From the IMG/VR virus record IMGVR_UViG_3300026521_000003, positions 124,001 to 188,000 of that record: a DNA stretch of 64,000 bases; one strand, 5' to 3'. The translations under genes were made by a program, and so were the position numbers. Within the stretch, counting starts at the first letter, position 1; every line of letters begins with the position of its first letter. Positions 2,435 to 48,000 of the stretch are shown piece by piece. The notes below the pieces were generated by a model, which saw nothing but the letters and a program-made list of their open reading frames with translations, did not search any database and was not told where the DNA came from.

Positions 2435-5182
2435 ATGAATCATAACTTTTATTATGAAGGTCGACAAATAAAAAATTATTTAATTGGGTTTGCAAGTATA
2501 TTTTCTGAAATACCTTATAAAAATCGAAAGGGCAAATTGGAAAGTGTGCCAATTCATTATGGTTCTCCATCAGATATAATATCATATTTAGAAATGAATG
2601 TAGATAATGATGAAACTCATAATAGAAATAGATTAAAAGATATATCTGTACCTTTATTTTCATTTCGTATGACATCGATGGAGCAAAATCTAGAACGTAG
2701 AAGAGCTCCACTCGATTCTATTGCTGTAGATTTACGTCCATTAGGATATGGAACCGGGTATGTAGCTATGAAACCATCACCATTTAAATTTACTTTTGAA
2801 TTATTGTTATGGGCGAGTAGTGATTATCAGGCGTTTGAAATAGTTGAACAAATAGTACCATATTTTAATACCCCTCAACAAGTAACAATAGAGCCCCTTC
2901 CTAGATGTCCGGTTTCAACAACAGAAGTTTTTTTAGAAAGTTTAGATATTGATACTGAGCCAGACTCTCAAAAATATTCTGCATTAGTAACAATGAATTT
3001 CAATCTAAATGGATGGTTATTATCACAACCAAGAATTTGGTCAACAAATATGCAGTTTGAATTATCTATGTTGGATAAAGAGAATATTACTCAAGGGGTC
3101 GATTTAAATGACTCTGATTATTCTATTGGACATGAGATAATTGATAATAATAGTAGAAATACCAATACAAATACTCAAAAAGAAACTACTATCGAATCAT
3201 TTATAAAAAGTTCTAATTTAAATGAATTATATTCTGAGACATTAGATATGATTAAAATATTAAAAGCAGAGGGTTATATTAGTGATGATGGTCATATTTT
3301 AACAACTGATAATATTACTATTTTTTATAAGGGTAAAGAAAAAAACCTTTCTATCGAATATATAAATTGGTTAATAGATGAAAACGAAGATCTTGAATAT
3401 CTATATGATAATTTTAATATGCAAGAAAAATTATTAGCTCAAGATTTAAAAGCTGATAATTTAGTACTTGATACTATGATTTATGATAAAAGTGAAACTG
3501 TTGAAATATATTTAAAATTGCTAGATAATAATTTAGTAACAATGGGATTTAATTTAACGGATGTACAAATAACAAATTCTGAGAAATTAAATATTTTTGG
3601 TACACCTAGAATTGATATTGATGATGCATTAAATAGAATGAAGTTATATTATAGTGTACTTAGTAATTTAAAAGTAAAAAAAGAAACTATATTATCTAAT
3701 ATTGATAGTACAATTAAACCGTCATTTATTAAATTTGATTTGCCAAATGATTTTGAAATTGATGAAAGATTAAAAAAGTATGATACTAAGTTAGTTATTA
3801 ATGATATATATACGACTATTAATGATGATTTAAGTATTGATTTAACTCTTGAAACAGAATTAGATCTTAGACTTTGTTATATAGAAAATAATGAATTGGT
3901 TGAATTAGAATATGATACAAAATTTAATTTTAGTCCACCGATTGGTACTATGAATGTTTATGCTATAATATCAAATGAATCAAATTATATCTTTGGTGGT
4001 TTATTATATGATCCATCGGATAGTTTATTTTCTAATGAGAAATATTTTATTAATGGTCAAAAAGTTCCATTGGAATTAAGTAATGATATACAAAATGTAG
4101 TTAATATAGAAAAAGTATTAAATTCTTCATTTAAAGAGATAGATAAATTTATTATTGCTATATTGATATTTAATAAATTGAAAAATAATATTGATGATAT
4201 TAATGATTTAGAAAATGATCAATTATTTAAAATCGCCAGCAAAAAATACAATATTACGAAGTATGAAATTGTTGAATTTGCAAATATCTTATATTCATTG
4301 AATAAGGAATTAAGTGATAATATTGATTTGATTAGTGTTCCATCAAATTTGCCAATTTCAACCGATGAATTTAACAATAAACAAATTAATATAGCACCAG
4401 ATTTATCTATGGTATTGGCACTAGATAAAAATAATAAGCCTATATACGATGTTAATAATGACGGTTTTATAAATAAAACCGATTTAGAAATATTGGGATC
4501 TGAGGTTGATAATATTGACTCATATGATTATGAATTGAAATATGGTGTATGGTATAAACGATTTAATATTGATAATATAACAGAAGAAAAAATACTTAAA
4601 ATATCACAAAACATTAAAACAATTTATTATTTAACTGAAAAAAACGATATGACGGAATTAAAATTATATTTAGAATTAAAAGATCAGGGATTAGTATCAG
4701 AGCAATATTCTATAATTTCTACGGAAAAAAATTTAAAAAAATTAAAAGCCTTAGGTTATAATATAGAAGAATTAGAAGATAAACTTCTTTTTATGCGAAT
4801 GTTTATAGATGCAGTAAAAAATATAATGATTGATGACCGAGATTTTATATTGTATCAAGTTCCAGAAATGAATGAAGATAGTAAGTCAATGTTATATCGA
4901 ACTGAAGGTTTGGATATTGATAGTATTGTTTTAGGTAAATTTATTGAAAAATATTTTCAATTATTAGATGATTATGACCAACGTATAATGGACGACATTC
5001 TATTTAGACAATTATTATCAAAAGATATGGGTGTGTATTATAATGCTGCATATGAATTTAATCTTGTGTGGGTAGATATAGTAAAAACGGATTTTTTTAA
5101 AAATAGTTTACAAGTAAAAACTCCAAGATTGGATGAAATTTTACCATATGTAAAAGAAAAAATAGATGAAATCCTAAAATAG
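2435..5182 (+). CDS. gp15: tail terminator/sheath stabiliser (T4 gp15-like N-terminal ~200 aa) with ~700-aa C-terminal extension
   Basis: FYYEGRQIKNYLIGFASIFSEI...VPIHYG...P.PFKFTFEL...QAFEIVEQIVPYFN is gp15-like; the remainder is unassigned. Confidence 0.8.
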   Translation: MNHNFYYEGRQIKNYLIGFASIFSEIPYKNRKGKLESVPIHYGSPSDIISYLEMNVDNDETHNRNRLKDISVPLFSFRMTSMEQNLERRRAPLDSIAVDLRPLGYGTGYVAMKPSPFKFTFELLLWASSDYQAFEIVEQIVPYFNTPQQVTIEPLPRCPVSTTEVFLESLDIDTEPDSQKYSALVTMNFNLNGWLLSQPRIWSTNMQFELSMLDKENITQGVDLNDSDYSIGHEIIDNNSRNTNTNTQKETTIESFIKSSNLNELYSETLDMIKILKAEGYISDDGHILTTDNITIFYKGKEKNLSIEYINWLIDENEDLEYLYDNFNMQEKLLAQDLKADNLVLDTMIYDKSETVEIYLKLLDNNLVTMGFNLTDVQITNSEKLNIFGTPRIDIDDALNRMKLYYSVLSNLKVKKETILSNIDSTIKPSFIKFDLPNDFEIDERLKKYDTKLVINDIYTTINDDLSIDLTLETELDLRLCYIENNELVELEYDTKFNFSPPIGTMNVYAIISNESNYIFGGLLYDPSDSLFSNEKYFINGQKVPLELSNDIQNVVNIEKVLNSSFKEIDKFIIAILIFNKLKNNIDDINDLENDQLFKIASKKYNITKYEIVEFANILYSLNKELSDNIDLISVPSNLPISTDEFNNKQINIAPDLSMVLALDKNNKPIYDVNNDGFINKTDLEILGSEVDNIDSYDYELKYGVWYKRFNIDNITEEKILKISQNIKTIYYLTEKNDMTELKLYLELKDQGLVSEQYSIISTEKNLKKLKALGYNIEELEDKLLFMRMFIDAVKNIMIDDRDFILYQVPEMNEDSKSMLYRTEGLDIDSIVLGKFIEKYFQLLDDYDQRIMDDILFRQLLSKDMGVYYNAAYEFNLVWVDIVKTDFFKNSLQVKTPRLDEILPYVKEKIDEILK

Positions 5183-6876: not shown

Positions 6877-9117
6877 ATGATGGCTCAACCTTTGATGATT
6901 CAATCAATAGTGACTGATAATAGGATAACTGCAAAATTTTCTGATAACGAATTGCCTAAATATGCAAGGCATGGGGAGTTATATGTTGTTAATGGGATAT
7001 TATACATTTATGTTGATTTAGATAATACCGGTTCAGATATTGGACAATGGTTTCCTATGACATATGAAAAAGAAATTGTTATGTATGTTGAAGCTGAAGA
7101 AAAGAATATTTGGTCATTTCCTATATCATTTTATACTCATAATATACATGTTATTGTATATGATCAAAATGACCGAGTATATACTTCTAATTTTGATTAT
7201 GTTATTAAAAATGGTATAATGACTTTAACTTTTAATGAATTAATATCAGGGAAAGTCTATATTATTATGGATAAAGGATTTGATTGGATTGATTCATCAT
7301 TAATTGTTGCTGATAGAAAATTTGCTATAACATCCGATGAAAATAATTTTTATTATATTGAAGTAAACACCGAAAATTTATCTATTGATAAAAATGGTAA
7401 AATTATTATTAAAAACGATTTATCTGTAAATGGTAATTTAGATATTAATGGTGATTTAAATATTACTGGTGATTTAAAAATAATGGGTGAAAACATTGAA
7501 ATAGAATCTTCAACATTAACTGTTGCTGATAATATAATAACCTTAAATAATGGATTCGTGGGTTCTCCTTTTCAGAATACAGGGATAGAAGTAGATCGTG
7601 GTAGTTTGGGTAAATTAAATATTTTAACATTTAATGAAACGATGGATTATGTGGAGATCCCAGTTATAGATAATGAAGGACTTATTAATCAAGAAGAAGT
7701 AGCTACTAAACCGTTTGTAAATAACTCAATAATGATTGAAACAACTAGAGCACAATCTGCTGAAATTATATTACAAACAAATATTGATAACGAAATTACA
7801 AGGGCACAATCTACTGAAAGTACATTACAAACAAATATTGATGATGAAGTAAATAGAGCACAATCTGCTGAAAGTACATTACAAACAAATATTGATAATG
7901 AAATTACAAGAGCACAATCTGCTGAAAGTACATTACAAACAAATATTGATAATGAAATTACAAGAGCACAATCTGCTGAAACTGTATTACAAACAAAAAT
8001 AGATGATGAAGTTAATAGAGCTATTATAGTAGAAGGTGATATTAATAATTTACAAACTAACTCTAAATCAAATTTGGTTTCTGCTATAAATGAAAACGTT
8101 GAAAGTATTAACATTGAAAAAGGACGTATTGATTCAATCTTATCAGCTAGTGAAGCTGATAAAGATTCATTTGCAGAGATAGTAACGTTGATAAATTCGG
8201 TTGATATTGAAAATGATAATGTTTTCGCTAATTATGTTTTAGTTAATGATGAACGTAGTGCTAATATTGAACAAGCAATATTAGATGAAACTACTAGAGC
8301 ACAATCTACCGAAAGTACATTACAAACAAATATTGATAACGAAGTAAATAGAGCAACTGCAGTTGAGGATAACTTAAATATATTGGTTTCTGATTTATCA
8401 GCAAATCTAGAAACAAATTTTCTCAACAAGTCAACATCAGTCGAACAGATTATAAATCCTAATTTAAAATTAGATGGTTCAATACTGACATGGTCCTTAT
8501 CAACAGAATGGTTTTATTATTCTATAAATGAAAATTTGACTACTATTAACATTAATAGTAGTACAAATATAAACGAATATGTTTATACTATGGATGCTAT
8601 TGAGACTATTAAATTTAATAAAACAGGTCAGATATGGTCATCATTATATGGTAATTTAGAAGATTATTTTTTAGGTATTAATGATCAGTCTAAAGACAGT
8701 TTATTAATTAATGGTTTAAGCGATACACAATTTGTAAGAAGTGACATAGATTATACTATGAATGCAAATTATCATATATTAAAAGATTTAACCGTAGATG
8801 GTACACTTACAGCCGGAACAATAATTGAAACTTCATCTATTAAATATAAAGAAAATGTAAAATTGATAAAATCACCATTAGAAATTGTATCTAAATTAGA
8901 TGGAGTTCGATACGTATGGAAAGATACAAAAAAAGATGATATTGGTTTTATTGCTGAAGATGTTAATTTAGTACTTCCTGAGTTAGTTCAAATTAACGAT
9001 GGAGAAATTGAAGGAATGAATTATTCAAAAATAACTGCTGTTTTAGTTGAGGCTATAAAAGAACAACAAAAACAAATTACAGAATTAATGAATGAGGTAA
9101 AAAAATTAAAAGGATAA
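6877..9117 (+). CDS. tail fibre protein with C-terminal intramolecular chaperone (peptidase S74-type)
   Basis: 18-aa coiled-coil repeats; C-terminal ETSSIKYKENV...LDGVRYVWK...IGFIAEDV..VLPELV...MNYSKITAVLVEAIKEQ. Confidence 0.85.
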   Translation: MMAQPLMIQSIVTDNRITAKFSDNELPKYARHGELYVVNGILYIYVDLDNTGSDIGQWFPMTYEKEIVMYVEAEEKNIWSFPISFYTHNIHVIVYDQNDRVYTSNFDYVIKNGIMTLTFNELISGKVYIIMDKGFDWIDSSLIVADRKFAITSDENNFYYIEVNTENLSIDKNGKIIIKNDLSVNGNLDINGDLNITGDLKIMGENIEIESSTLTVADNIITLNNGFVGSPFQNTGIEVDRGSLGKLNILTFNETMDYVEIPVIDNEGLINQEEVATKPFVNNSIMIETTRAQSAEIILQTNIDNEITRAQSTESTLQTNIDDEVNRAQSAESTLQTNIDNEITRAQSAESTLQTNIDNEITRAQSAETVLQTKIDDEVNRAIIVEGDINNLQTNSKSNLVSAINENVESINIEKGRIDSILSASEADKDSFAEIVTLINSVDIENDNVFANYVLVNDERSANIEQAILDETTRAQSTESTLQTNIDNEVNRATAVEDNLNILVSDLSANLETNFLNKSTSVEQIINPNLKLDGSILTWSLSTEWFYYSINENLTTININSSTNINEYVYTMDAIETIKFNKTGQIWSSLYGNLEDYFLGINDQSKDSLLINGLSDTQFVRSDIDYTMNANYHILKDLTVDGTLTAGTIIETSSIKYKENVKLIKSPLEIVSKLDGVRYVWKDTKKDDIGFIAEDVNLVLPELVQINDGEIEGMNYSKITAVLVEAIKEQQKQITELMNEVKKLKG
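7735..8020 (+). repeat. 54-bp tandem repeat encoding E(I/V)(T/N)RAQS(A/T)ESTLQTNID(N/D)
   Basis: About 5 consecutive near-identical units, with a further copy near 8285-8360. Confidence 0.9.
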
Positions 9118-9120
9118 TAA

Positions 9121-10131
9121 ATGTTTTCGTTACCTATATACCCAGATCTTGAACCAACGTATATTAGAGAAGAATTTATCCCTTTTTTGAAAAAATATAA
9201 ATCAATAATATATGATTTATATTTTACAGTACGTATACCTCCTTTTGAACAAGATGCAATGGGTACCATATTTAGTAAAGAAGATATACCATCATTAATT
9301 TCTAATGCTTTAATTATTCAAAATGAAACAAAAATACCTATTTCAGCTGTATTCAATAATATTTTTATATCTCCATCGGAGAAAAATTTAGATATTTTTA
9401 TTAAACATTTTACACCACTATATAATTTTGGGGTCAGATCAATAACAATTCCTTTTACATCATGGCTTATGTTTGATAAATTGCAGAATTCTTTCCCTGA
9501 ATTATATATAAAAAATACAGTTTTACAAAGTGTATCCGAACCAAGAGAAGTTTACAATCTAGCGATAAATGGATTTGATTATATTAATTTAGACCGAAAT
9601 TTATTACGTAATCAAAATAAACTTAAAATTATAGATAAAGCTAGAAAAGCTGCAGAATCAAAATTAGGAAAGCCTATCAAACTTAGTATTTTATTTAATG
9701 AGAACTGTATAGGTAATTGTCCTATACAGAACGAACATTATTTATATAATTCTCATAATAATATTAATAACCAACCATATACTTTTTTTAAATCATCTAT
9801 GAGTAAAATTAGTTGTCTTGAATGGGAAAAGAAATCTCCAGAGTTACTATTAAAAAAAGCATCAGTTATAAATGATGAGAAATTTATGAATGGTTTAGAT
9901 ATGATTGATGTATTTAAACTACATGGTCGTGAATCTAAAAATGTTTTTTTAAATAGTTTAAATATAATTAAGTCTACATATGATAAAACTGAAATAATAG
10001 ATGAATTATATTACACTCGTATTAAATATAATATAAAAGATATTGATTATAATCTATGGGTAGAAAAAGTAAAAAATTGTAACTTTGATTGTTGGGATTG
10101 TACTTATTGTGAGGATTTATTTAAAAAATAA
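9121..10131 (+). CDS. U32-family (peptidase-like/Fe-S hydroxylase-like) protein
   Basis: GFDYINLDRNL, NENCIGNCP, FKLHGRE and C-terminal CNFDCWDCTYC. Confidence 0.75.
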   Translation: MFSLPIYPDLEPTYIREEFIPFLKKYKSIIYDLYFTVRIPPFEQDAMGTIFSKEDIPSLISNALIIQNETKIPISAVFNNIFISPSEKNLDIFIKHFTPLYNFGVRSITIPFTSWLMFDKLQNSFPELYIKNTVLQSVSEPREVYNLAINGFDYINLDRNLLRNQNKLKIIDKARKAAESKLGKPIKLSILFNENCIGNCPIQNEHYLYNSHNNINNQPYTFFKSSMSKISCLEWEKKSPELLLKKASVINDEKFMNGLDMIDVFKLHGRESKNVFLNSLNIIKSTYDKTEIIDELYYTRIKYNIKDIDYNLWVEKVKNCNFDCWDCTYCEDLFKK

Positions 10132-10770: not shown

Positions 10771-11841
10771 ATGGCTGATTTGATAAACATAGAAACTGTT
10801 GATGGTCAAGAAGTAATTGATTCTAATGCTCAAGTTAATTATGATGCAATATCTAATATCCCTCCATCTTTAGTTGATACTAGTACTCATAATCATGATA
10901 ATGAATACATGAGTAAGAATACTATTGAAGATGAATTTACACGTATAATGAATAAAGTAGCATCTTTAACAAAGGCATTAACCATTAGACCTTTAAAAAC
11001 GAAAGGTTTTTTAAACGGTGGTTATAAAAGTGGTTATGTTTATGCACAAAGAGTCCAACGGTTTAATACTGTTACTGAAACTGGAGTTGAAATTGGACAA
11101 ATAGGTACAGTTGCATCGTATTATACACCTGGTGCTTCATCGGAATTGAAAGGTTATTATTTTGGTGATGCTAATAGTAGTACAACTGCTGGAGATCATT
11201 CTAGAACTGGAAGAGATTTAGATAAAATTACATATTTAACTGAGGTAGAAGAATATGTAGGAAATATAACATTACATAATACAAAATCAACAATTTATAA
11301 TATATATTCGCAATCTAAAATATTTTTATCGAATGATGGAGCTGGATGGTCTAAATTATCTGTTATAACGGATACCATTGATAGTGTTTCATCAACACTT
11401 AATGGGTATGGAATGGGTAGACAAGGGTTATCTTCAGAAACGTTTGGATATGTGGTTCAAATAGGTAATTATGAAAGAACTTCATTAAAATTTGATTATT
11501 TAACAAATATAACAGATATAGGTACCACACAACAGATTAGACAACAACCTGCTGGACTTTCAAAAGATAAAGATAAAGGATATTGGATTGATTATGGTAC
11601 TGCTAATAATTGGCGAGTAGATATGTTAAATAATAGTGTGTCCAATATTGTCTGTTTTACAGAGGGATTTGGTGAAAGTAATGCGTTAGGGTCTGAGAAA
11701 GAAGGATTTATGATGGGTGGTTATGATGGTGCGCAGCACGGGAAGGTTCAAAAAATGGTATGGGAAACAGAGACTGCTAGTAATGTATTAGGTGGATCAT
11801 TAGCAATACCACAATCATCAGCTGGAATGGCAGAATCATAA
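10771..11841 (+). CDS. virion fibre/receptor-binding protein with HxH module and kelch-like beta-propeller
   Basis: HNHDNEY motif, short coiled coil, then blades such as KGFLNGGY, KGYYFGD, FGYVVQ, KGYWID and EGFMMGGY. Confidence 0.65.
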   Translation: MADLINIETVDGQEVIDSNAQVNYDAISNIPPSLVDTSTHNHDNEYMSKNTIEDEFTRIMNKVASLTKALTIRPLKTKGFLNGGYKSGYVYAQRVQRFNTVTETGVEIGQIGTVASYYTPGASSELKGYYFGDANSSTTAGDHSRTGRDLDKITYLTEVEEYVGNITLHNTKSTIYNIYSQSKIFLSNDGAGWSKLSVITDTIDSVSSTLNGYGMGRQGLSSETFGYVVQIGNYERTSLKFDYLTNITDIGTTQQIRQQPAGLSKDKDKGYWIDYGTANNWRVDMLNNSVSNIVCFTEGFGESNALGSEKEGFMMGGYDGAQHGKVQKMVWETETASNVLGGSLAIPQSSAGMAES

Positions 11842-11852
11842 GGTAATAAATA

Positions 11853-12839
11853 ATGGCAAAATTAAATCAACTTAAAGTAGATAATAATAATATATTTGAT
11901 ATTAACAATAGGATAGATTGGACAAGATTTAAAAATACACCATCGACATTAGTAAGTGCTTCGGGACATAATCATGATGATTTGTATTACAAATCATCAG
12001 TAGTTAATGATAAATTTAAATTGGAAGAGGATAAGATTGATTTGCTTGAAAAACGTATTGAAGTATTATCCTATAAAACAGATATAATGATGGCGGGTGG
12101 ATTTTTAAATGATACTAAAATTCATAACTATAATTTTTCAACTGAAGTAACTAATGAAATATCTACAAATACTAATATGATAAGTATTAATACACCTGGT
12201 ATTTCATCAAAAGAATTTGGTTATTTTACTAATAAAGATAAAATGATTGATAAATTTTATCATTTTACATTGGTAATTGAATCAATCCTGCAATCAAATA
12301 TTGAACCAAAAGCATCATTAATAGATTTTGCTGTTCAAAGTTTAGGATTTATTACGGATGGTATTGGGTGGAATAAACTCAATCAATTACTAGATATATG
12401 GGAAACTAAAAATGATAATCCAGTTGATGTGTCTGGACGTACATTTTTATCATCTAGTGTTACTGGATATTGTAAAGGATCGGATCTAGGTATGGTAAAA
12501 GAATTAACATATACAACGGAAGTATTAAAAGAATTATCAGAGATAAGAACAATCGGAATAACAACAGGACTTAATAAAAGTTCAAATTTAGGATATTGGA
12601 TTTCAAAGATAAACGGTAATTATGAACATAATTATCTAACAGAAAGCTTTAGATCGATAAATATTTTTATAGATGATATGGATAATTCATCAACCTCAAC
12701 AACTGAATTTTTTGGTATGATTGTAGCAGGAGGAATAGATGGTAATTTAACTAATAAATTGATGTGGTCTACTCTTTCAATTACGCAATCTATATCTCTT
12801 TCTTTAAATAAGAGTGGAGCTAGTTCAATAGAACTATAA
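11853..12839 (+). CDS. paralogue of the 10771 propeller fibre protein
   Basis: Shared N-terminal module (IDW..FKNTPSTLV..SGHNHDDLYY) and degenerate G(Y/F) blades. Confidence 0.6.
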   Translation: MAKLNQLKVDNNNIFDINNRIDWTRFKNTPSTLVSASGHNHDDLYYKSSVVNDKFKLEEDKIDLLEKRIEVLSYKTDIMMAGGFLNDTKIHNYNFSTEVTNEISTNTNMISINTPGISSKEFGYFTNKDKMIDKFYHFTLVIESILQSNIEPKASLIDFAVQSLGFITDGIGWNKLNQLLDIWETKNDNPVDVSGRTFLSSSVTGYCKGSDLGMVKELTYTTEVLKELSEIRTIGITTGLNKSSNLGYWISKINGNYEHNYLTESFRSINIFIDDMDNSSTSTTEFFGMIVAGGIDGNLTNKLMWSTLSITQSISLSLNKSGASSIEL

Positions 12840-12856
12840 TAAAACTGGAGAATATA

Positions 12857-13078
12857 ATGGATGTATTAAAACTAGAAATTAATAAACAAACGATATTGGA
12901 TGAAGCTAATAATATAGACTGGAGTAAGGTAAAAAACACACCTTCGATAATTATTACTAGTAATACTCATACTCATGATGATAGATATTATCGTCAAAGT
13001 GATGTTGATAGTAGAATAAATTCACTAAGTCTAGCTATAGCAGATTTAGAAGAAAAAATAAATAACTTAGGAGTATAA
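12857..13078 (+). CDS. headless mini-paralogue of the 10771/11853 N-terminal module
   Basis: IDWSKVKNTPSIIITSNTHTHDDRYY followed only by a coiled coil. Confidence 0.65.
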   Translation: MDVLKLEINKQTILDEANNIDWSKVKNTPSIIITSNTHTHDDRYYRQSDVDSRINSLSLAIADLEEKINNLGV

Positions 13079-30015: not shown

Positions 30016-33000
30016 ATGAATAAATTGAAATCTATAATATTAACAGAAGCATCATTAAATGATAAAATAACATCTAGAGCAAAAATAACGTATGATGCAT
30101 TAATAGCAATAATTTTAGCAACTGATGATGGTAAAATCACAGATAAAAATAAAAAAGAAATAGCTGATGAATTAGATATTACTATTCCTACATTAGAACG
30201 GTATATCAAACAAGCAGTCACAAATAAATTTATTAGTTCATCTGGAGAGGTTCTTGACAAATATAAAAAGGAATCTACTGGTAAAGTAAAAGCATCGGGT
30301 AAAGTATCTCAAGCATTAAATGCGAGAGTTAAAAAATTTAAAGCACCAAAAGTTTCTTCTAATAATTTATTTTCTGAACAAGTATTTAAAATGTTATCAT
30401 TAATGGATGGTCAAGCAGCACAGGCAGGTGTTAAAAACTCATTAATGTTGACAGGAGATCCTGGAACTGGAAAAACTTCATTTATTCGTAATTTCGCTAA
30501 ATTATTAGGATTACCTCTTATTCCAATAGAGGCACCTCATATTACAGAAGAACATATTATAAATATACCATTTATGATTATTAGAGGTAATAAAGTAAAA
30601 AAAGAAAATGCTATTATTGAAACTGCTGGAAAAGCAAATTTGGATGATAAACAAGAATTTGATATTGTTCAAGCAGAATCAAATCTAGTCACTAAATTAA
30701 AAGCTATGAAGAATCTTAAACTAAAAGATCAACAACATATTGCATCAATAGCTAGTGATAAAAATTTAAGACCTATATACTTAAATTATAAATCATTAAT
30801 TGATTCAATTAGAGATAGTTACCATTGTATTTTATTTTTAGATGAATATTATAGAAATGATAATATGAAAATCAGAAATATTCTTAGAAATATTTTAAAT
30901 GGGCGAATAGGTAATGATAAAATACCAAAAGGGACATTTATTGTTTATGCATCAAATATGGAAGATGATGGTGTTGAAGATATTCCTATGAATAACGATT
31001 TTGCAGAAATGGAATTTAAAACTCCTGATAGAGAACAATGGTTTAAATATATATTAAATAAATATGAAGAGAATTCAGGAAATGATTATCCTGGTGTAAA
31101 ACTGCAACCAGAAGTTTTTAATAAATTTTATGACGTATTAGAGCAATCAGATTTATCATATGAAGATGCTACAGCAGAAGTTAGAAATTCTCCAAGAAGA
31201 TGGGAGCAAATATTATTATATGTTAATGCATCTTTACCGGTATCAAATATTAAAGAAGCTAGAACATTAATGTCAAATTTACAAGTTAATTTTAGAAATT
31301 ATACTGAAGAAACTGTTTCAAATTTATATCCTAAATTTGAAAAAATGGTAGTTGGATTAATTAAAGAAACTTCAGGAATTGAATTTGATGGACGACCAAC
31401 TAATCAAGTTGATTGGAAAGATACTCTCCAACAACAATTAGAAGTTAAAATTAAATTAGATGGACAAAGTGATTCTGAGAAAGAGGTTAGACAATACGTG
31501 CCTGTTGTTTCGGGTGAACCTGGTATTGGTAAAACGGCGCATATGAGAACGGTAGCTGATGATTTAGATCTCCATTTTATTCATATTGATGTATCGACAT
31601 TAACTAGAGAATCAACTACCGGTATTCCTAAAGCAAGTCAAGCAACAGATATTGATGGTAATCCAGAATTTGATCAAAATGGTAATCCTGTTATGACCAC
31701 AGAATTTTCAAAACCTGAATTGTTAGATTTGATTGAGAAAAAAATGCAAGAAGAATTAGCTGAAGATGAAATGTTTCCAGAAGATCAAAGAAAAAAAGGT
31801 AAAGGTAAATATAGATTTTTATTATTATTTGATGAATTAACAAGAGCAGATGCACAAGTCTTCAATGCTATTAGAAAATTATTATTAGAGAAATCATTTA
31901 ATGAACAATATGATTTACCAAAATCAATTATGACTGTTGGTGCTCTCAATCCAGTTGATAATGGAGCAGAAGAATTAACAAAACATATGAGAGATGTATT
32001 GGATATTATTCCATCTAGAGCATCATGGGCTAAAACAGAATCATACTTATTGAGTGAAGAACGTCCTGTTGGATTAGAAGAAGTTATGGGGTTTGATTTA
32101 AATACTGCAACAGTTGGAGCATTAAAAGGTTTACTACAACAATATCAATCTAAAGATGAAGATTGGAGAGGTAATCCAGTTTCAAAAGAAGAGCGATTAT
32201 TCAATTTACGAGATGGGTCAAATATAATTTATATTTCGCCAAGAGAAATTACGGATATTGTTACTATGACTAATGCTAATATCGTTAATAGATTAACAAA
32301 AGTTGGATTAAAAAGTTTTTCAAATGAAGTTCAATCTGAAGAAGTAGATGGTATGAGTGATGATGAATTTATGCAACTTATGATGCAACAAGCTGAAAAC
32401 CCAGATAGTGTAAAGGAAAAAATTGCTCAAGATAAGGGTATTTTTAATTTAAGAAATAGGTATAGTGAAGAAGATTACGATGTGTTTATAAGAGCTATGA
32501 TTAATGAATTTCGGGAAGCGTGGGCTTCAAAATTAACTTTTATTTGTAAAAAAATGGATATTGATGCGGCAAACGTTTTATCATTAACAACAGGTTTTAT
32601 ATCTACAAATAGTGTAGTATATGATCAATATGAGGCTATTAAAACATTAGTTGTGGATGATGTTAAAAATATTGAAGAAATGTTCGATGCTTATTGGGAT
32701 AATCCAGAAGAATTATATGATTCACCGCATTTTGATAATTATTTAACTGTAAACTTTACAGCTCCTCAAAAATTTACACAAGAAATAACAGATTATTTAA
32801 GTGATAAATTGGTGGAAATTGAACAAGATACTAGTACGGATATGGTAACTGTTGAATCTGAAAATGGACCTGTTGAAATTCCTAAAAATATAGCTAAGAA
32901 GATGGAATTATTTTATAAGTATATTTTATATACAAAGTCAATATTAAAAGTTTTAACTGATAAAAGTGAATATGCAGGGAAAGTAAAAGAGGCTCAAAGA

Positions 33001-33183
33001 ACGGGTCAATATCTAAGTAATCTTCATATCGCATTACAAATGCATGGTAAAGATTTTATGTCTAAAAGTGGATTATTACCATATGTATTAAATAAAAATC
33101 TTGATGCTGATATGGTTAAGAAAGTATCGGAAGCAGGAAATGAAATTAGAACAATGTTAAGTAATTTTGGTATTAAAGGTTAA
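30016..33183 (+). CDS. tandem MoxR-like AAA+ ATPase (two AAA modules) with N-terminal HTH
   Basis: HTH KKEIADELDITIPTLERYIK. Module 1: GDPGTGKT / ILFLDEYYR / VYASN / SPRRWE. Module 2: GEPGIGKT / LLLFDELTR / VGALN / SPREI. Confidence 0.85.
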   Translation: MNKLKSIILTEASLNDKITSRAKITYDALIAIILATDDGKITDKNKKEIADELDITIPTLERYIKQAVTNKFISSSGEVLDKYKKESTGKVKASGKVSQALNARVKKFKAPKVSSNNLFSEQVFKMLSLMDGQAAQAGVKNSLMLTGDPGTGKTSFIRNFAKLLGLPLIPIEAPHITEEHIINIPFMIIRGNKVKKENAIIETAGKANLDDKQEFDIVQAESNLVTKLKAMKNLKLKDQQHIASIASDKNLRPIYLNYKSLIDSIRDSYHCILFLDEYYRNDNMKIRNILRNILNGRIGNDKIPKGTFIVYASNMEDDGVEDIPMNNDFAEMEFKTPDREQWFKYILNKYEENSGNDYPGVKLQPEVFNKFYDVLEQSDLSYEDATAEVRNSPRRWEQILLYVNASLPVSNIKEARTLMSNLQVNFRNYTEETVSNLYPKFEKMVVGLIKETSGIEFDGRPTNQVDWKDTLQQQLEVKIKLDGQSDSEKEVRQYVPVVSGEPGIGKTAHMRTVADDLDLHFIHIDVSTLTRESTTGIPKASQATDIDGNPEFDQNGNPVMTTEFSKPELLDLIEKKMQEELAEDEMFPEDQRKKGKGKYRFLLLFDELTRADAQVFNAIRKLLLEKSFNEQYDLPKSIMTVGALNPVDNGAEELTKHMRDVLDIIPSRASWAKTESYLLSEERPVGLEEVMGFDLNTATVGALKGLLQQYQSKDEDWRGNPVSKEERLFNLRDGSNIIYISPREITDIVTMTNANIVNRLTKVGLKSFSNEVQSEEVDGMSDDEFMQLMMQQAENPDSVKEKIAQDKGIFNLRNRYSEEDYDVFIRAMINEFREAWASKLTFICKKMDIDAANVLSLTTGFISTNSVVYDQYEAIKTLVVDDVKNIEEMFDAYWDNPEELYDSPHFDNYLTVNFTAPQKFTQEITDYLSDKLVEIEQDTSTDMVTVESENGPVEIPKNIAKKMELFYKYILYTKSILKVLTDKSEYAGKVKEAQRTGQYLSNLHIALQMHGKDFMSKSGLLPYVLNKNLDADMVKKVSEAGNEIRTMLSNFGIKG

Positions 33184-39536: not shown

Positions 39537-42500
39537 ATGACACATTTTATTCAATTGCCTAACAAAACGGTTTCTTTATTAGACCAAGAGTTGGCATTAA
39601 AAAATGGAAATATTGCGTTTGAATTTGGTGGTACTGAAAAAGTACTTGTTACTGAAGAAGCACTACAAACAGCAATAGCAGGGATGTCTGCACCGATTAC
39701 TGTTGCAACTAAAGCCGATTTAGATGCATTGACAAATAATGATGTAATGACACATCAGAGAATTTTTGTACAAGATGATGGTGATGGTAAATGGGCATAC
39801 TATATGATTACAGATGTTACAGGAACAGTCCCAGCATATATTAAGGTATCTGACGAAGATATTTTTGGGGCTTTATTTTCTGATGATGTAACAGCACAAA
39901 TATCTAAAATCGGAGATTTAGCTAATTTAAATACTGGTATTTCTGTTAATTTGACAGATCCTACAACAATTATTGAAGCTATTAACGAAGTTTATGCTCA
40001 ACATTTAGCTCTTAACACAAGAGTTGGTGATAATGCTGATTTAACTACTACTGAAAAGGGTACTATTGTAGGTGCTATCAATGAATTGGTTGTAAATATC
40101 TCTTCTAATGATGGTGATATTTTAACAATCCAAAACAATATTGGTGATTTAACTACTATCAACTTAACAGAAGCTGTTGATAAAGCTTCAATCGTTGCGG
40201 CAATCAACAAGGTTATTGCAGTTCAAAATACTAAATTAGATGCAGAAGATGTTGTTCCTATCATAGTTTCATATACAGGTCTTTTAACTGAATTAACAAC
40301 AACTAACCAAAATTCTTTAGTAGAAGCAATTAATGAAATTGTTGCTGATGTTCAAGCTAATGAAGATGCTACAATTGCTGTTACTGGTGATTTAGCTAAT
40401 TTAGTTACTACTGATAAAACTAATTTAGTTGCTGCAATTAATGAGGTTCAAGGAAATGTTGTTACTGAAACTAATAGAGCTACTGGAGCTGAAGCTACAT
40501 TACAATCTAATATTGATGCTGAGGTTGCTAGAGCAACAACTGCTGAAAATACATTACAAACTAATTTAGATACTGAAGCTGCTACAAGAGCTGCTAATGA
40601 TGGTGATTTAACTACTTTAACTACTGATGTTAAATCTAATTTAGTTAATGCTATTAATGAAGTTGATGCTAATACTGATGCAGAGGCTGCAAGAGCAATA
40701 GCTGCTGAAACACAATTAACAACTGATTTAAATAATGAAGTAACTGCAAGAACTGCTGCTGATACTGCGATTCAAGCTGAGTTAGATGCTACACAAGTTG
40801 CTGCTGGATTGGGTGAAGATGGAAGTTATACAGCTGATGCTACAACAAATTATATAGCGACTGCAACAACTTTAACTGGAGCTGATAAATTATTAGATGC
40901 ACAAACTAAAGTAAATGCTGATGCAATCGCTGCTGAAACTACAAGAGCGACAACTGCTGAAACTACATTACAATCAAATATTGATACTGTATCTGCAGAC
41001 TTAGCTACAGAAACAACCGATAGAATAACAGCTGATAATGCTTTAAGTGATAGAATCGATTCATTAGAATCTGATGTAGATGGCGCAACAGGTGATTTAG
41101 CCGATTTAACTACTGATGCAAAAGACACTTTAGTTGATGCAATCAATGAAGTTGATGCACATGCTGATAAAAATGCGGCTGATTTAGCTACTGAAACTAC
41201 AAGAGCCACTGCTGCTGAAACAACTCTTCAAACTAACTTAGATAATGAAACTGCTAGAGCACAAGCTGCTGAAGCAACTTTAACAACTGATTTAGCAAAT
41301 GAAGTAACTAGAGCAACAGCTGCTGAACAAGCTAATACTGATGCGATTACTACTGAAACTACAAGAGCCACTGCTGCTGAAACAACTCTTCAAACTAACT
41401 TAGATAATGAAACTGCTAGAGCACAAGCTGCTGAAGCTAATTTACAATCTAATATTGATGCTGAAGCTGCTACTAGAGCAACTAATGATGGTTCATTAAC
41501 ATTCGATGAAAGTTTAAATACTACTACTACTGTTGAAAATGAAGATGGTACAACTTCTGAAGTTGTAACAACTCCAAGTGATTTAACTGATGCTATTAAT
41601 AAAGAAAATGCTAGAGCTAAAACTGTTGAAGCTGCTATTCAAGCTGATGTTGATGCTAATGAAGCTGCTATAACAGCAACTACTGATACATTAAGAAGTG
41701 ATTTAGATGCTGAAATTGCTAGAGCTACTACTGCTGAGCAAACTTTAGATACTAAAATTGATACAGCTGTTTCTAACTTAGTTGATGGTGCTCCAGAATT
41801 ATTAGATACTTTAAATGAACTGGCTCAAGCAATCAACAATGACGAAAATTTCTCTGTAACTGTTGCTAATGATATAGCTAACGCTAAATCTGAGTTAAGA
41901 GGTGCTGCATCTGAAGCTATGGATACAATGAAAGAAATTGAAGATGCTTTCAATGCTGAAAAAGCTGCAAGAGATGCAAGAGATGCTGAACAAGAACAAG
42001 CACTTACTGATGAAGTAACTAGAGCAACAACAGCAGAAGCTACATTACAAGCTAATATCGATGATTTAGCAGCAGAAGTAGAAAGTGGTAATGATGGATT
42101 ACAAACTGAAGTAGATGCTATTGAAAGTAATGTTGGGTTAAACGCTGATGGTTCTTATACTGCAGATACAGCAACAAATTATATTGGTACTGCTTATTCA
42201 GTAAGAAATGAAACTAAATTATTAGATACACAAGTTAAAGCTAATGCTGATGCAATTACTGCTGAAACTACAAGAGCTACTGATGCTGAAGCAACTTTAA
42301 CAAATGATTTAGCAAATGAAGTTACAAGAGCAACTACTGCTGAAACTACATTACAATCAAACATTGATACTGTTAGCGCAAATTTAGCTACTGAAACTAC
42401 TGCTAGAACGGATGCAGATACAGTTCTTCAAACTAATATTGATTCTGAAGCTGCTACTAGATTAGCTGCTGATAATGCATTAGATGCTAGAATTACTACT

Positions 42501-43817
42501 GTTGAAGATCAAGTTAATGGAAATATTGGTGATTTAAATACATTAACTACTGATGATAAAACTAATTTAGTTGCTGCAATTAATGAAGTTGATGCTCATA
42601 CAGACACAAATGCTGCAGGTTTAGCTACTGAAATTACAGCTAGACAAGACGCTATAACTAATGAAGCTACTTTAAGAGCTAATGCTGATACTCAATTAAC
42701 TAATGATATAGCTGCTGAAACTACAAGAGCGACATCTGCTGAAGCGGCAAATACAGCGGCGATTGCGACTGAAACTACAAGAGCAACTACTGCTGAAGGT
42801 AATTTAGGTTTTAATGCTGTATTAACTGTTGATGATGGTGAAGGTGGTACTAGATTAGCTGGAAACTTAACTGAAGCAATTAATGCTGAAGTTGCTAGAG
42901 CAACTGCTGCTAATACAAATACTAATAACGATTTATCTGCTGAAATTACTAGAGCTACTGCTGCTGAAGCAACTCTACAAAGTAATATTGATAATGAAGC
43001 AACAAGAGCACAAGCTGCTGAAGCTACATTAACTAATGATTTAGCAAGCGAAGTAACTAGAGCTACTGCTGCTGAAGCAACTTTACAAACTAATTTAGAT
43101 AATGAAACTACAAGAGCAACTACTGCTGAAAGCACACTTCAATCTAATATTGATGCAGAAGCATTAACTAGAAGTACTAATGATGGTTCATTAATTTTCA
43201 ACTCGCCATTAGCAGATGCTACTAATTTAACAGATGCTATTAATGCTGAATTATTAAGAGCAACTACTGCTGAAGCTGCTAATACTACTGCTATCAATAA
43301 TGAAAATACAAGAGCAACTGCTGCTGAGACTGTATTAACTGATAATTTAAATACAGAAATTGCTAGAGCTACAGCAGCAGAACAAGCTAATGCTGATGCA
43401 ATCGCTGCTTTAGATGGTGCAACAGATGCAAAAATAGGAGATTTAACAACTCTTACTACTGATGCTCAAAATACTGTTGTTGCTGCTATTAATGAAGTTA
43501 ATGCTGAAACTGATGCTAATACAAATCAAGTATCAGTTATTAAAGCATTTATTAATGATATGCTAAGTAAATCTGGAAAAACAGTTGATGCGATTGAGTT
43601 AGTTGCTAATACTGAGTATTCAATCGATATTTCTGATTTAGCTTCTACAAATGTTGCTGTAACAGTTTATTCTGTTAATGGTACCATTTTGAGTCAAGAA
43701 TACGGTATGTTTATTGATATTGATACTGCTAATGCGATTGTAAAAATCACTTCTTCAATAGATGTTACTGTTAAAGCTGTTATTGCTTCTGATATTTCAG
43801 GATTAACAATAGCGTAA
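39537..43817 (+). CDS. long coiled-coil tail fibre protein
   Basis: Dozens of E.TRAT.AE.TLQ.N.D 18-aa repeats, GDL..LTT..K.NLV.AINE knots and the fibre motif LVDGAPELLDTLNELAQAINND; TATAAATA at 39469-76. Confidence 0.85.
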   Translation: MTHFIQLPNKTVSLLDQELALKNGNIAFEFGGTEKVLVTEEALQTAIAGMSAPITVATKADLDALTNNDVMTHQRIFVQDDGDGKWAYYMITDVTGTVPAYIKVSDEDIFGALFSDDVTAQISKIGDLANLNTGISVNLTDPTTIIEAINEVYAQHLALNTRVGDNADLTTTEKGTIVGAINELVVNISSNDGDILTIQNNIGDLTTINLTEAVDKASIVAAINKVIAVQNTKLDAEDVVPIIVSYTGLLTELTTTNQNSLVEAINEIVADVQANEDATIAVTGDLANLVTTDKTNLVAAINEVQGNVVTETNRATGAEATLQSNIDAEVARATTAENTLQTNLDTEAATRAANDGDLTTLTTDVKSNLVNAINEVDANTDAEAARAIAAETQLTTDLNNEVTARTAADTAIQAELDATQVAAGLGEDGSYTADATTNYIATATTLTGADKLLDAQTKVNADAIAAETTRATTAETTLQSNIDTVSADLATETTDRITADNALSDRIDSLESDVDGATGDLADLTTDAKDTLVDAINEVDAHADKNAADLATETTRATAAETTLQTNLDNETARAQAAEATLTTDLANEVTRATAAEQANTDAITTETTRATAAETTLQTNLDNETARAQAAEANLQSNIDAEAATRATNDGSLTFDESLNTTTTVENEDGTTSEVVTTPSDLTDAINKENARAKTVEAAIQADVDANEAAITATTDTLRSDLDAEIARATTAEQTLDTKIDTAVSNLVDGAPELLDTLNELAQAINNDENFSVTVANDIANAKSELRGAASEAMDTMKEIEDAFNAEKAARDARDAEQEQALTDEVTRATTAEATLQANIDDLAAEVESGNDGLQTEVDAIESNVGLNADGSYTADTATNYIGTAYSVRNETKLLDTQVKANADAITAETTRATDAEATLTNDLANEVTRATTAETTLQSNIDTVSANLATETTARTDADTVLQTNIDSEAATRLAADNALDARITTVEDQVNGNIGDLNTLTTDDKTNLVAAINEVDAHTDTNAAGLATEITARQDAITNEATLRANADTQLTNDIAAETTRATSAEAANTAAIATETTRATTAEGNLGFNAVLTVDDGEGGTRLAGNLTEAINAEVARATAANTNTNNDLSAEITRATAAEATLQSNIDNEATRAQAAEATLTNDLASEVTRATAAEATLQTNLDNETTRATTAESTLQSNIDAEALTRSTNDGSLIFNSPLADATNLTDAINAELLRATTAEAANTTAINNENTRATAAETVLTDNLNTEIARATAAEQANADAIAALDGATDAKIGDLTTLTTDAQNTVVAAINEVNAETDANTNQVSVIKAFINDMLSKSGKTVDAIELVANTEYSIDISDLASTNVAVTVYSVNGTILSQEYGMFIDIDTANAIVKITSSIDVTVKAVIASDISGLTIA
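41188..41437 (+). repeat. 88-bp exact direct repeat (41188-41275 / 41350-41437) inside the fibre gene
   Basis: Copies are offset by 162 bp, i.e. 3 x 54-bp repeat units. Confidence 0.85.
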
Positions 43818-45093: not shown

Positions 45094-48000
45094 ATGGCGA
45101 TTTTAAAAAGAAGTAAACAATCGATTGTTGGATTAGATGTTCAATTAGCAAATATTGAAACAAATATAACTAATAATCTAACCAATCTTAATGCTGAAAT
45201 TACAAGAGCACAAAATGCAGAAGGTGTAATAAACAATAATCTTAATAGTGTTACGGCTACAGTTAATATATTAAATGCTGATAGTACTACTGTGGGATCA
45301 GTTGATAAAAAAATAATCGACGCCACTTCAGAGTTAATGACCGCTACAAATACATATACTAAGGTGGAAGTTGATAATATTGTATCAACAAAACTTGATA
45401 GTTCATTGGTGTTAAGTACTGTTTCATCGGGTAATTTGATTGTAACCCAAACAGAATTAAATTTAAAAGCTAATTCGTCGGATGTTTATAGTAAATCTGA
45501 GATGGATACTAATTTAGATGGTAAAGCTGATGCATCATCAACTTATACGAAAACAGAAGTTGATAGTATAGCGGCTAATTTAGCTAATACATCTGATGTT
45601 TACACTAAAACAGAAACAGATAATCTAATTGCACCAAAAGCCAATTCATCCGATGTTTATACTAAAACAGAAGTTGATTCTAGTTTAGCTAATAAAGTAA
45701 ATACCACCGATACTATAACTGCAATTTCATCAACAAATAAAATAGCGACTCAAACAGAATTAGATTTAAAAGCTAATTCATCCGATGTTTATACTAAACC
45801 GGAAGTTGATTCTAGTTTAAGTGGTAAGATTAATACTACTGATACAGTTACGGGGATATCATCTACTAATAAGGTAGTAACTGAAGCTGAACTTTCAACT
45901 AAAGCTAATACTACTGATGTTTACACCCAAACACAGATTAATGATGCTTTAGCATTGAAACTGAATTCGACAGATGGTGGAAAAATTGGACCTTCACTTA
46001 AAGTTGTTGATGAAACTAATATTGCAGATACAAAAATATTATCGTATGATGCAGCTAGTGGTAATATAGTATATGTTGATAAGCCATCTTCTGGTGATTC
46101 TATTGATGATGGTACTATAACTAGTACTACTACTTGGAGTTCATCAAAAATTAAAACAGAATTAGATTTAAAAGCAGATGCGGATAATGTTTATACTAAA
46201 ACAGAAGTTGATACATCTATTTCTGCAGCAAGTCAAGGGATAAAATATGCTGTTGCTGATATAGATGCATTGAATGCTTTAACAGATATGGAACAAGATG
46301 ATCAAGCATTGGTTGAATCGGATAGATATGTCTATAAATATGATGCTACAGATGGTTGGGTTCAATTCTATGCAATGGATGCTACACATAATCACGATGA
46401 TTTATATTACACTAAATCAGAAGCCGATACATTTTTAGGAACAAAACTGAATTCGACAGATGGTGGAAAAATTGGACCCTCACTTAAAGTTGTTGATGAA
46501 ACTAATATTGCAGATACAAAAATATTATCGTATGATGCAGCTAGTGGTAATATAGTATATGTTGATAAGCCGGCAGATGGTCTTCCAGGAGAGGATGGGG
46601 CTGATGGTACATTGGCTGATGATTCTGTTGTATCTACAAGCACTACATGGACATCTAGTAAAATTGATAGTGAATTAAGTTTAAAAGCTGATGCAGCAGA
46701 AACATATACTAAGACAGAAGTTGATGATATTGCTTTAACAAAGGTTAATGTAGGAGATGTATTAAGTGAAATTTCAACATCAAACAAAGTTGTTACTCAA
46801 ACAGATATTGCAGGCAAAGCAGATGCAACAAATGTTTATACTACTTCAGAAATAGATTCATTAGCATTATCAAAAGTGAATACCAGCGATGTGTTATCAT
46901 CTATTACTGATAGTAATAAAGTTGTTACTCAAACAGATATTGCAGGTAAAGCGGATGCAACAAACGTATATACTAAGTCGGAAAGCGATAGTAATTTATC
47001 ATTAAAGGCTAATACATCAGATGTATATACAAAATCAGAAATAGATTCTAGTTTAGCTGGTAAATTAAATACTACGGATAGTGTTACTTCTGTTTCGGAT
47101 ACTAATAAATTAGTTACAGAATCAGAAATAACTAGTTTTGCTAATTCTGCGGATGTTTATACTAAATCAGAAGTTGATGCTATCGTTTTACCGAAATTTG
47201 ATGATGCTGTAGCTTTAACTAGTGTTTCAACAAGTAATAAGTTAGTAACTGAAACGGAATTATCAACAAAAGTTAATACTACTGATATTAAAACATCAAC
47301 ATCGTCTACTAATAAAATTGTAACAGAATCAGATGTAACCGCTGCAATAGATGCAAATAATGCTACACTATCACAAGCCCCAATTATTGCTGTAGATAGA
47401 CCTATATTATCTACACAATCTGCGAACGATCTTGATTATGTGTTTTCTTTCCCTTTAAGCAAAACACCACACGGTTTAATTGCAGTAAATGATGAAATTA
47501 CTATTTATGATTATGATGGTTCTGGACAATCGATAGTATTTGAAAATGTTTCTCTTTTTTCTGATAAACATGGTGAAATCGCAGTAACGTTAGCAAGTAC
47601 ATCAGATGAAGATGATTATGCAGGAAAAACAATTAAAGTATGTTATTTAACAACTGAAACAACAGTTACTCCAGGAACAGATGAAGCGCACCCAATTATA
47701 ATTAATACTAATGTTGAATTTGAATCACAAGGTTCGGGAACAACAAATTATTCGATTGATTTTTCACAAGGTAACTATTATATGGTACAATTTGACGTAA
47801 CAGAAGATGCTGATGGTAATGGTACTGATTGGAATCCAAAAGTTTCAGTAGTATTAGATACTTCACATTCTGCTAATGGTGGATTTCATTCTTCTAATTC
47901 AACTGATTATGAAGCAAATCTTTATTTAAATGATGACGATTACGCTGCTTTAGATAAAAAATCTATTGCATGGCCAGGAACTAGTGATGAAGCTCAGTAC

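Follow-up and report, generated by a model that had tools for sequence, protein, structure and literature searches.

Known metal-clamped fibers and the three-gene locus

In several trimeric phage fibers and spikes (T4 gp37 and gp12, R1/R2 pyocin fibers, P2 gpV, and phi92 gp138), the HxH motif is conserved and six histidines from three chains bind Fe or Zn octahedrally on the axis; such sites are established for T4 gp37, R-pyocin fibers, and the P2 and phi92 spikes (PMC6116203). These solved examples are homotrimers that carry the motif inside β-helical shafts. A second architecture is that of Staphylococcus phage phi11 Gp45 and the 80alpha RBP, in which a trimeric coiled-coil stem with a six-His Fe site on the axis is followed by one β-propeller per chain, used for receptor (GlcNAc-WTA) binding (PMC4901313). 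Gp45 is a homotrimer with five-bladed propellers, a His-x7-His site, a long bent stem, and a C-terminal tower. Nearly all solved phage fibers are homotrimers; however, three consecutive paralogous, gp37-like tail proteins of the virophage DSLV2, conserved as a set, of similar length, and forming one joint head, are reported to copurify as a 1:1:1 heterotrimer (PMC12724248).

Here, we analyzed a 64,000-nucleotide stretch (the window; positions 124,001 to 188,000 of IMG/VR record IMGVR_UViG_3300026521_000003) of a 290-kb phage genome. The initial annotation, made from sequence alone, described three adjacent paralogues sharing one N-terminal HxH module, two with propeller heads and one headless. 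This observation held in full: all three open reading frames (g1, g2, and g3) are present, each preceded by a Shine-Dalgarno sequence. The features of the region, in window coordinates, are as follows.

2435..5182 (+), T4 gp15-like tail sheath stabilizer with a long C-terminal extension (PF16724, E = 3.3e-24; phrog_227), marking a T4-like myovirus neck/tail region
6877..9117 (+), upstream tail fiber gene with a C-terminal Peptidase_S74 intramolecular chaperone (Pfam, 7.7e-11; tail-fiber PHROGs), context as part of a structural module
10771..11841 (+), g1, 356 amino acids (aa): N-module (aa 1-76) and predicted six-bladed kelch-like propeller (aa 78-356); the most conserved of the trio
10888..10896 (+), g1 HxH codons (His40-Asn-His42)
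10915..10989 (+), g1 coiled-coil segment (aa 49-73; AF2 helix 49-70), a/d core F56, I59, V63, L66, L70
11853..12839 (+), g2, 328 aa: N-module (aa 1-75) and predicted, diverged six-bladed kelch-like propeller (aa 77-328)
11967..11975 (+), g2 HxH codons (His39-Asn-His41)
11994..12068 (+), g2 coiled-coil segment (aa 48-72; AF2 helix 48-71), with a polar residue (E/Q/R in most orthologues) at core d position 58
12857..13078 (+), g3, 73 aa: N-module only (hairpin, HxH unit, three heptads), with a GGAG Shine-Dalgarno sequence
12968..12976 (+), g3 HxH codons (His38-Thr-His40), followed by the invariant Arg-Tyr-Tyr of the canonical shaft repeat
12995..13069 (+), g3 coiled-coil segment (aa 47-71), a/d core V50, I54, L57, I61, L64, I68, L71
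13081..13767 (+), g4, 228 aa, of unknown function; directly downstream of g3 in every locus, with its Shine-Dalgarno sequence inside the end of g3; given as context only

The shared N-module of about 75 residues comprises a β-hairpin, one HxH unit, and a three-heptad coil, and g3 stops where the coils of g1 and g2 end. Within the genome, g3 matched g2 at E = 4.1e-12 and g1 at E = 1.4e-5, and g1 matched g2 by BLASTP at E = 4e-21 over 343 columns, indicating real homology; only these three genes in the 290-kb genome carry the complete module. In an alignment of 36 N-modules from 12 genomes, M1, the Pro, and both His were invariant, and there were no indels from the DW/NY motif to the end of the coil. 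The heads of g1 and g2 were predicted as six-bladed kelch-like propellers (AF2 mean pLDDT, 87.6 and 87.7, respectively), and Foldseek placed Keap1/KLHL kelch domains on top for both (E = 4e-12 and 4.4e-12; TM 0.75-0.83). In contrast, no Pfam family matched g1 or g2 at E ≤ 0.1, Kelch models included, so the heads are kelch-like in fold but are not filed as members of the sequence family. The same head fold occurs in jumbo phage proteins (Ralstonia RP12 ORF142, BcepSaruman, CBB, and PhiPA3), of which RP12 ORF142 is a sequence homologue (tblastn, 1e-14; phrog_35574, 3e-15; BFVD, E = 2e-19). However, the RP12 propeller is a stand-alone 292-aa protein without an N-module and lies next to a collagen-like protein.

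To place the module among known fibers, we ran a profile search, which returned 1,466 proteins at E ≤ 1e-3. The top hits were 470 to 2,750 aa long with 5 to 28 tandem units each, and one protein (P0034) also carries the Phage Tail Collar domain. The core of the module is one unit of a widespread tandem sHxHDdRYY... shaft repeat; here there is a single unit per chain, at the N terminus, followed by an α-helical coil and spread over three genes. A profile search of the PDB gave nothing significant. Its best match, 80alpha FibU (E = 0.11), fell in a region not resolved in that structure, and neither Gp45 nor the 80alpha RBP was among the hits; the resemblance to phi11 Gp45 is architectural only. 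A word-index search with g3 found only 2 short proteins, but this reflects a limit of the index rather than real rarity, since context look-ups and the full profile search found many. A search of the Atlas with g4 returned only viral hypothetical proteins.

Conservation of the trio and coupled loss of HxH

Conservation of the three-gene set in related phages had been proposed beforehand as a test of the heterotrimer. The trio was intact and in the same order in 19 of 19 distinct loci, with g1 identity down to 45%. g1 has 31 orthologues at 44 to 96% identity. The dN/dS of its head was 0.06 to 0.24 in most pairs and 0.48 in one distant pair; the g2 head evolves faster (0.09 to 0.49). g3 is under purifying selection like its neighbors (dN/dS, 0.17 to 0.32) and is 71 to 76 aa long in 16 of 19 trios. 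The g3 stem always ends within a few residues of the end of the g1 and g2 coils, and there are no indels between the paralogues across the stem.

The g3 of the window has no head, but orthologues in loci L006, L007, and L018 match Laminin_G_3 (PF13385; 2.5e-14, 2.5e-9, and 5.7e-13, respectively), a ConA-like lectin domain; a fourth locus, L030, was assigned by similarity only. We first considered that g3 is a truncated remnant of such a LamG-headed gene. This reading was rejected because the LamG-bearing loci are nested deep inside stub-bearing ones in both the g1 and the g2 halves of a reciprocally rooted tree, so that one gain, in a nested clade of three loci, would explain the pattern, against at least four identical truncations, and because the short versions are under selection. 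The stub is thus the ancestral state. The LamG head of L018 is different, however, and may or may not represent a second, independent fusion, since the tree is a polytomy and the two heads align at only about 23% identity (E of about 0.05 to 0.09).

The strongest new evidence comes from one lineage, seen in two independent samples (loci L028/L039 and L038), in which HxH is degraded in all three genes (g1, H→P; g2, H→N; g3, both H→Y). All three reading frames stay intact, and g1 and g2 remain under clear purifying selection (w, 0.12 to 0.33; g3, 0.35 to 0.60). HxH is present in all three paralogues in 18 of 19 trios and in 30 of 31 g1 orthologues (the exception being P0008), and no locus shows a partial loss. 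The main tail fiber of the same phage keeps a canonical DSHxH motif, so this is not a genome-wide abandonment of metal sites. With standard residue volumes, the first His layer goes from 3 × His (about 459 Å3) to Y+P+N (about 421 Å3) in a mixed trimer, whereas the homotrimers would be about 582, 339, and 342 Å3, overfilling the axis in g3 and underfilling it in g1 and g2. Summed side-chain volume is therefore conserved only for the mixed trimer, and the pattern fits one six-His site shared by three different chains, although the coupled loss is a single evolutionary event.

We next modeled a complex of g1 (aa 1-80), g2 (aa 1-80), and g3. The model passed its controls (ipSAE, 0.72; best of 3 controls, 0.26), a mark reached by 58 of 80 solved complexes and 2 of 110 mismatched pairs. 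The runs shared at least 97% of contacts, partner pLDDT was at least 88, and the predicted in-register three-chain bundle had an interface running along the hairpin, the HxH unit, and the a/d positions. Nevertheless, this test cannot separate a mixed trimer from homotrimers, because paralogues are close cousins of the true partner. Scoring of g/e' charge complementarity for homotrimers and mixed trimers in 12 genomes likewise gave no consistent preference, with self-complementary charges in the g2 coil in 7 of 12 loci. The metagenome scan brought the total to 19 trios, too few for direct-coupling analysis.

Mixed trimer or separate fibers

In our best explanation, g1, g2, and g3 are the three chains of one short virion fiber, in which the hairpins, HxH units, and helices would form a parallel, in-register stem whose six histidines, two per chain, would clamp a metal ion (Fe or Zn) on the axis, as in other phage fibers. 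At its distal end the stem would display two different propellers, one conserved (g1) and one fast evolving (g2), presumably two ligand-binding heads for host surface structures, while the third chain normally ends with the stem and in some lineages carries a lectin head instead. The homology, the predicted folds, the conservation, the selection on g3, and the coupled evolution of the HxH sites rest directly on our data; metal binding, 1:1:1 stoichiometry, location on the virion, and the receptor-binding role are inferred, as is expression, a search for RNA runs having listed none. The 1:1:1 heterotrimer is the best-supported reading, held with somewhat better than even confidence.

The interpretation in the initial annotation, a heterotrimeric fiber tip in which the headless chain makes room for two propellers, was thus partly supported. 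The steric argument is not supported and not needed, given that phi11 Gp45 carries three propellers on one homotrimer and that g3 has acquired its own head in some lineages. In addition, the shared module is the N-terminal, presumably virion-proximal, end rather than a tip. The DSLV2 precedent differs in that the chains here are very unequal (356, 328, and 73 aa) and carry separate globular heads.

The main alternative, possible but less likely, is that the genes encode three separate homotrimeric short fibers that share an inherited anchor and trimerization module and dock to equivalent sites on the virion, with (g1)3 and (g2)3 bearing three propellers each and (g3)3 serving as a headless stub, adaptor, or plug that some lineages equip with a lectin head. 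Homotrimers are the rule for phage fibers, the HxH unit is a generic repeat of mostly long, presumably homotrimeric fibers, so that each paralogue may well self-trimerize, and many phages carry several receptor-binding proteins with a common N-terminal anchor. The g2 charges and phi11 Gp45 also favor this view, and a g3 that gains a LamG head looks like an independent fiber. However, it gives no function for a headless stub kept under purifying selection across deep divergence, and it does not predict the simultaneous degradation of HxH in three genes while another fiber of that phage keeps the motif.

It is doubtful that g3 is instead an assembly factor, a decoy copy of the stem that nucleates or regulates trimerization of g1 and g2 in the manner of T4 gp57A-type chaperones or caps unoccupied docking sites, and that is absent from the mature fiber or substoichiometric in it. 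g3 is small, mostly a coil, encoded directly after its putative clients, and predicted to bind their N-modules, but a chaperone would not be expected to acquire receptor-type lectin heads at its C terminus or to keep the full HxH unit with the canonical Arg-Tyr-Tyr, and the coupled loss argues for a permanent shared core. Least likely, the trio is not a virion fiber at all but a set of intracellular host-takeover proteins with the N-module as an oligomerization tag; kelch proteins of poxviruses and giant viruses (among the BFVD hits) act inside cells, and the genes downstream are replication genes. Against this, the N-module core is a repeat specific to phage tail fiber proteins, some with the Phage Tail Collar domain, the genes sit directly after a tail fiber and a gp15-like neck protein, and related propellers in jumbo phages are annotated as virion structural proteins.

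Implications for receptor-binding fibers

The evidence also leaves room for a stronger reading, which we consider only slightly more likely than not: an obligate, asymmetric 1:1:1 fiber in which three anciently diverged paralogues jointly build one six-His metal clamp and present two different kelch propellers on one stem, with the third chain a free socket that evolution has repeatedly loaded with lectin heads and, in one lineage, the shared metal site replaced by a Tyr/Pro/Asn packing. This would be a natural example of a multispecific receptor-binding device made by subunit asymmetry rather than by several fibers.

The trio serves as a marker for a clade of uncultured, AT-rich jumbo T4-like phages. 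Phage receptor-binding fibers are almost always treated as homotrimers, and host range engineering assumes one specificity per fiber. A conserved fiber built from three different chains, with two distinct propeller heads and a stub that can accept a third, would change that picture and would be a compact route to multivalent or combinatorial host recognition. It would also give a natural system for studying how paralogues become obligate heteromers, in which the metal site shared between genes would be the coupling element and the L028 lineage, inferred to be metal free, a built-in natural control.

Genomic context of the trio

The 64-kb region (bases 124001-188000) belongs to a 289,880-bp IMG/VR virus record, is about 26% G+C, and has no tRNAs. 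It encodes a T4 gp15-like tail sheath stabiliser (PF16724, E 3.3e-24) and a tail-fibre gene with a Peptidase_S74 chaperone domain, followed by a Cys-rich protein and a methyltransferase, the three genes under study (g1, g2, and g3), and then unknown genes and a UvrD-like helicase. It is therefore an uncultured, AT-rich, T4-like jumbo myovirus; no cultured phage is close at the DNA level. The features considered here are as follows.

2435-5182 (+), T4 gp15-like tail sheath stabiliser, 915 aa
6877-9117 (+), tail-fibre gene with a Peptidase_S74 chaperone domain
9121-10131 (+), Cys-rich protein, 336 aa
10085-10759 (+), Methyltransf_24 protein
10771-11841, g1, 356 aa
11853-12839, g2, 328 aa
12857-13078, g3, 73 aa
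25159-29574, large ORF with no Pfam match
30016-33183 (+), double AAA-type ATPase, 1055 aa
35829-38132 (+), Lon-like ATP-dependent protease (phrog_4871, E 1.6e-232)
39537-43817, large ORF with no Pfam match, in a patch of higher G+C (33-35%)
45094-48111 (+), probable fibre-like protein, 1005 aa
52790-54421 (+), gyrase B-like protein

Only residues 6 to 200 of the sheath stabiliser match PF16724, and its roughly 700-aa C-terminal extension is unexplained apart from a weak dockerin-like hit below the Pfam cut-off. The S74-chaperone tail fibre contains tandem repeats of about 17 aa, and its size differs greatly among the window and its counterparts in the related loci L006, L007, L010, and L011 (746, 892, 1114, about 1938, and about 2173 aa); in contrast, the trio next to it keeps a constant size. 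The Cys-rich and Methyltransf_24 proteins together cover the two halves of one PHROG profile (phrog_1458; 519 positions) and appear to be a split, or elsewhere fused, pair. Both lie between the tail fibre and the trio in most related loci; however, three loci (L009, L013, and L016) lack a separate methyltransferase there, and in a fourth (L022) the Cys-rich gene lies downstream of the trio. A role in modifying fibre proteins is conceivable.

A shared N-terminal module and predicted propeller heads

The genes g1, g2, and g3 are consecutive, separated by 11 and 17 nt, and each has its own Shine-Dalgarno sequence (no alternative genetic code was used). Within the genome, g3 matched g2 at E 4.1e-12 and g1 at E 1.4e-5, and g1 and g2 are homologous along their whole length (BLASTP E 4e-21). 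In an alignment of 36 N-modules from 12 genomes, the initiator Met, one Pro, and both His of the HxH motif were invariant, with no indel between the DW/NY motif and the end of the helix. AF2 models of g1 and g2, built with alignments of 44 and 30 sequences, had mean pLDDT of 87.6 and 87.7, respectively, and each showed short N-terminal strands, one helix (residues 49 to 70 in g1 and 48 to 71 in g2), and an all-β domain. Foldseek placed Keap1 and KLHL kelch domains on top for both models (E about 4e-12; TM 0.75 to 0.83), although no Pfam Kelch model matched. The closest viral relative of the head is a stand-alone 292-aa protein of Ralstonia jumbo phage RP12 (ORF142), which has no N-module and is preceded by a 170-aa collagen-repeat protein (ORF143); in that phage, the trimerising element and the propeller may be separate gene products. 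Only g1 to g3 carry the full module in the 290-kb genome, whereas the 1005-aa protein at 45094-48111 carries a single internal copy of the HxH core unit, about 430 residues into the open frame, and four matches to phrog_5004. The initial annotation, which described three adjacent paralogues sharing one N-terminal HxH module, two with propeller heads and one headless, was correct in every point of observation.

To determine what the module is, we searched a profile of the 36 modules against 1.84 billion representative proteins and found 1466 proteins at E<=1e-3. The best hits were fibre-sized proteins of 470 to 2750 aa that matched 5 to 28 times each, one of which also has a Phage Tail Collar domain. 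The matching part comprised profile positions of about 35 to 64, a tandem unit of roughly 23 residues of the type 'sHxHDdRYYtesEvD.kl'. The N-terminal module is therefore a lineage-specific N-terminal hairpin, one copy of a very common fibre-shaft repeat, and a three-heptad coil. g3 keeps the canonical form of the repeat, with Arg-Tyr-Tyr invariant, whereas g1 and g2 have drifted from it. HxH motifs that build six-His octahedral Fe or Zn sites on the three-fold axis are documented for T4 gp37 and gp12, the R-pyocin fibres, and the P2 and phi92 spikes (PMC6116203; PMC11705849); however, no solved structure matched the module by sequence.

Conservation of the trio and of the headless chain

Relatives were drawn from the viral and metagenome collections and from contigs that encode g1 orthologues, giving 19 distinct loci with full coverage and g1 identity from 96% down to 45%. 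Every one of these has g1, g2, and g3 in this order. One public assembly (GCA_029935755.1) holds two different contigs (L011 and L012; 496 kb and 228 kb), each with its own diverged trio, suggesting two related very large phages in one sample or bin. On a separate 1.2-kb contig (L019, positions 1-810), g2 is split into two ORFs by a stop after its first blade while the downstream mini-gene is intact, which could reflect an assembly error or a broken g2.

g3 is 71 to 76 aa in 16 of the 19 loci. Nei-Gojobori dN/dS for g3 was 0.17 to 0.32, the same range as the neighbouring genes; the mini-gene is therefore a real, selected gene. In the remaining three loci (L006, L007, and L030), g3 is 298 to 309 aa; L006 and L007 match Laminin_G_3 (Pfam; 2.5e-14 and 2.5e-9, respectively), and L030 carries the same head by similarity. 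We first considered that the stub was a truncation of such a gene. However, a tree of g1 and g2, each rooted on the other, nested L006 and L007 deep inside stub-bearing lineages in both halves, indicating that the stub is ancestral here and that the lectin head is a later C-terminal fusion. A short contig (L018) carries a g3 with a different Laminin_G_3 head joined right after the usual C-terminal 'LFG', which may or may not represent a second, independent fusion.

One mixed trimer or three homotrimers

We next asked whether the three chains are more likely to form one mixed trimer or three homotrimers. The headless chain is kept at constant length, ending where the other two coils end, over a divergence at which the g2 heads retain only 32 to 50% identity. 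A mixed trimer explains this directly, whereas under separate homotrimers a stub needs a function of its own. The strongest evidence is coupled evolution of the putative metal site. In one lineage, sampled in two independent assemblies that differ by a few nucleotides (L028/L039 from JGI and L038 from ENA; g1 is P0008), the HxH is degraded in all three genes: g1 has Pro-Asn-His, g2 has Asn-Asn-His plus a one-residue insertion, and g3 has Tyr-Asp-Tyr. All three ORFs are otherwise intact, with g1 and g2 still under clear purifying selection (w 0.12 to 0.33) and g3 less strongly so (w 0.35 to 0.60). In contrast, the other 18 trios, 30 of 31 g1 orthologues, and every g2- or g3-type cluster seen keep both His, and no genome shows a partial loss. 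The main tail fibre of the same phage retains a canonical '...DSHxH' fibre motif (DSHNH), so the phage has not given up such sites in general. The lineage represents a natural, apparently metal-free variant of the stem. If the six-His site is shared by three different chains, losing it in one chain frees the other two, whereas three independent homotrimers give no reason for a joint loss. The replacements are also complementary in size: by standard residue volumes, the first layer changes from about 459 Å3 (3 x His) to about 421 Å3 for Tyr+Pro+Asn, compared with about 582, 339, or 342 Å3 as homotrimers. Nevertheless, this is one evolutionary event and is suggestive rather than statistical.

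We also modelled the complex of g1 (residues 1 to 80), g2 (residues 1 to 80), and g3, each with its own alignment. The score was ipSAE 0.72, compared with 0.26 for the best of three controls; this mark was reached by 58 of 80 solved complexes and by 2 of 110 mismatched pairs. The runs agreed in at least 97% of contacts, the partner pLDDT was at least 88, and the interface ran along the hairpin, the HxH, and the a/d positions. However, close cousins of a true partner also pass this test; it therefore shows that the three modules are mutually compatible, not that they prefer each other to themselves. There is a published case of such an assembly, in that three consecutive gp37-like proteins of virophage DSLV2 co-purify as a 1:1:1 heterotrimer (PMC12724248).

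On the other hand, homotrimers are the overwhelming rule, and the repeat comes from fibres that are presumably homotrimeric. The g2 coil has self-complementary g/e' charges in 7 of 12 genomes, although overall the charges did not discriminate, and g2 does carry a polar residue at one core d position in most orthologues. In addition, phi11 Gp45 is a homotrimer whose Fe-clamped coiled-coil stem carries three propellers with sparse contacts between them (PMC4901313), so that no chain needs to be headless to make room, as the initial annotation had proposed. Lineages in which g3 carries a lectin head point the same way on this argument.

Taken together, the interpretation in the initial annotation was supported in part: the heterotrimer is the best explanation and more likely than not, whereas the steric argument should be dropped. 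This inference rests mainly on conservation of the stub and on the coupled, volume-compensated loss of HxH, and three separate homotrimers remain a serious, although less likely, rival. While the gene arrangement, the shared module, and the conservation of the trio are established by the sequence comparisons, the mixed stoichiometry and metal binding are inferred, and function as a receptor-binding device and position on the virion are inferred only from gene neighbourhood and family resemblance. HxH-clamped trimeric fibres, propeller-headed receptor-binding proteins, and one reported heterotrimeric fibre are already known, and the trio varies on these rather than forming a new category. In this view, g3 is better described as the third strand of the stem and a free socket for an optional head.
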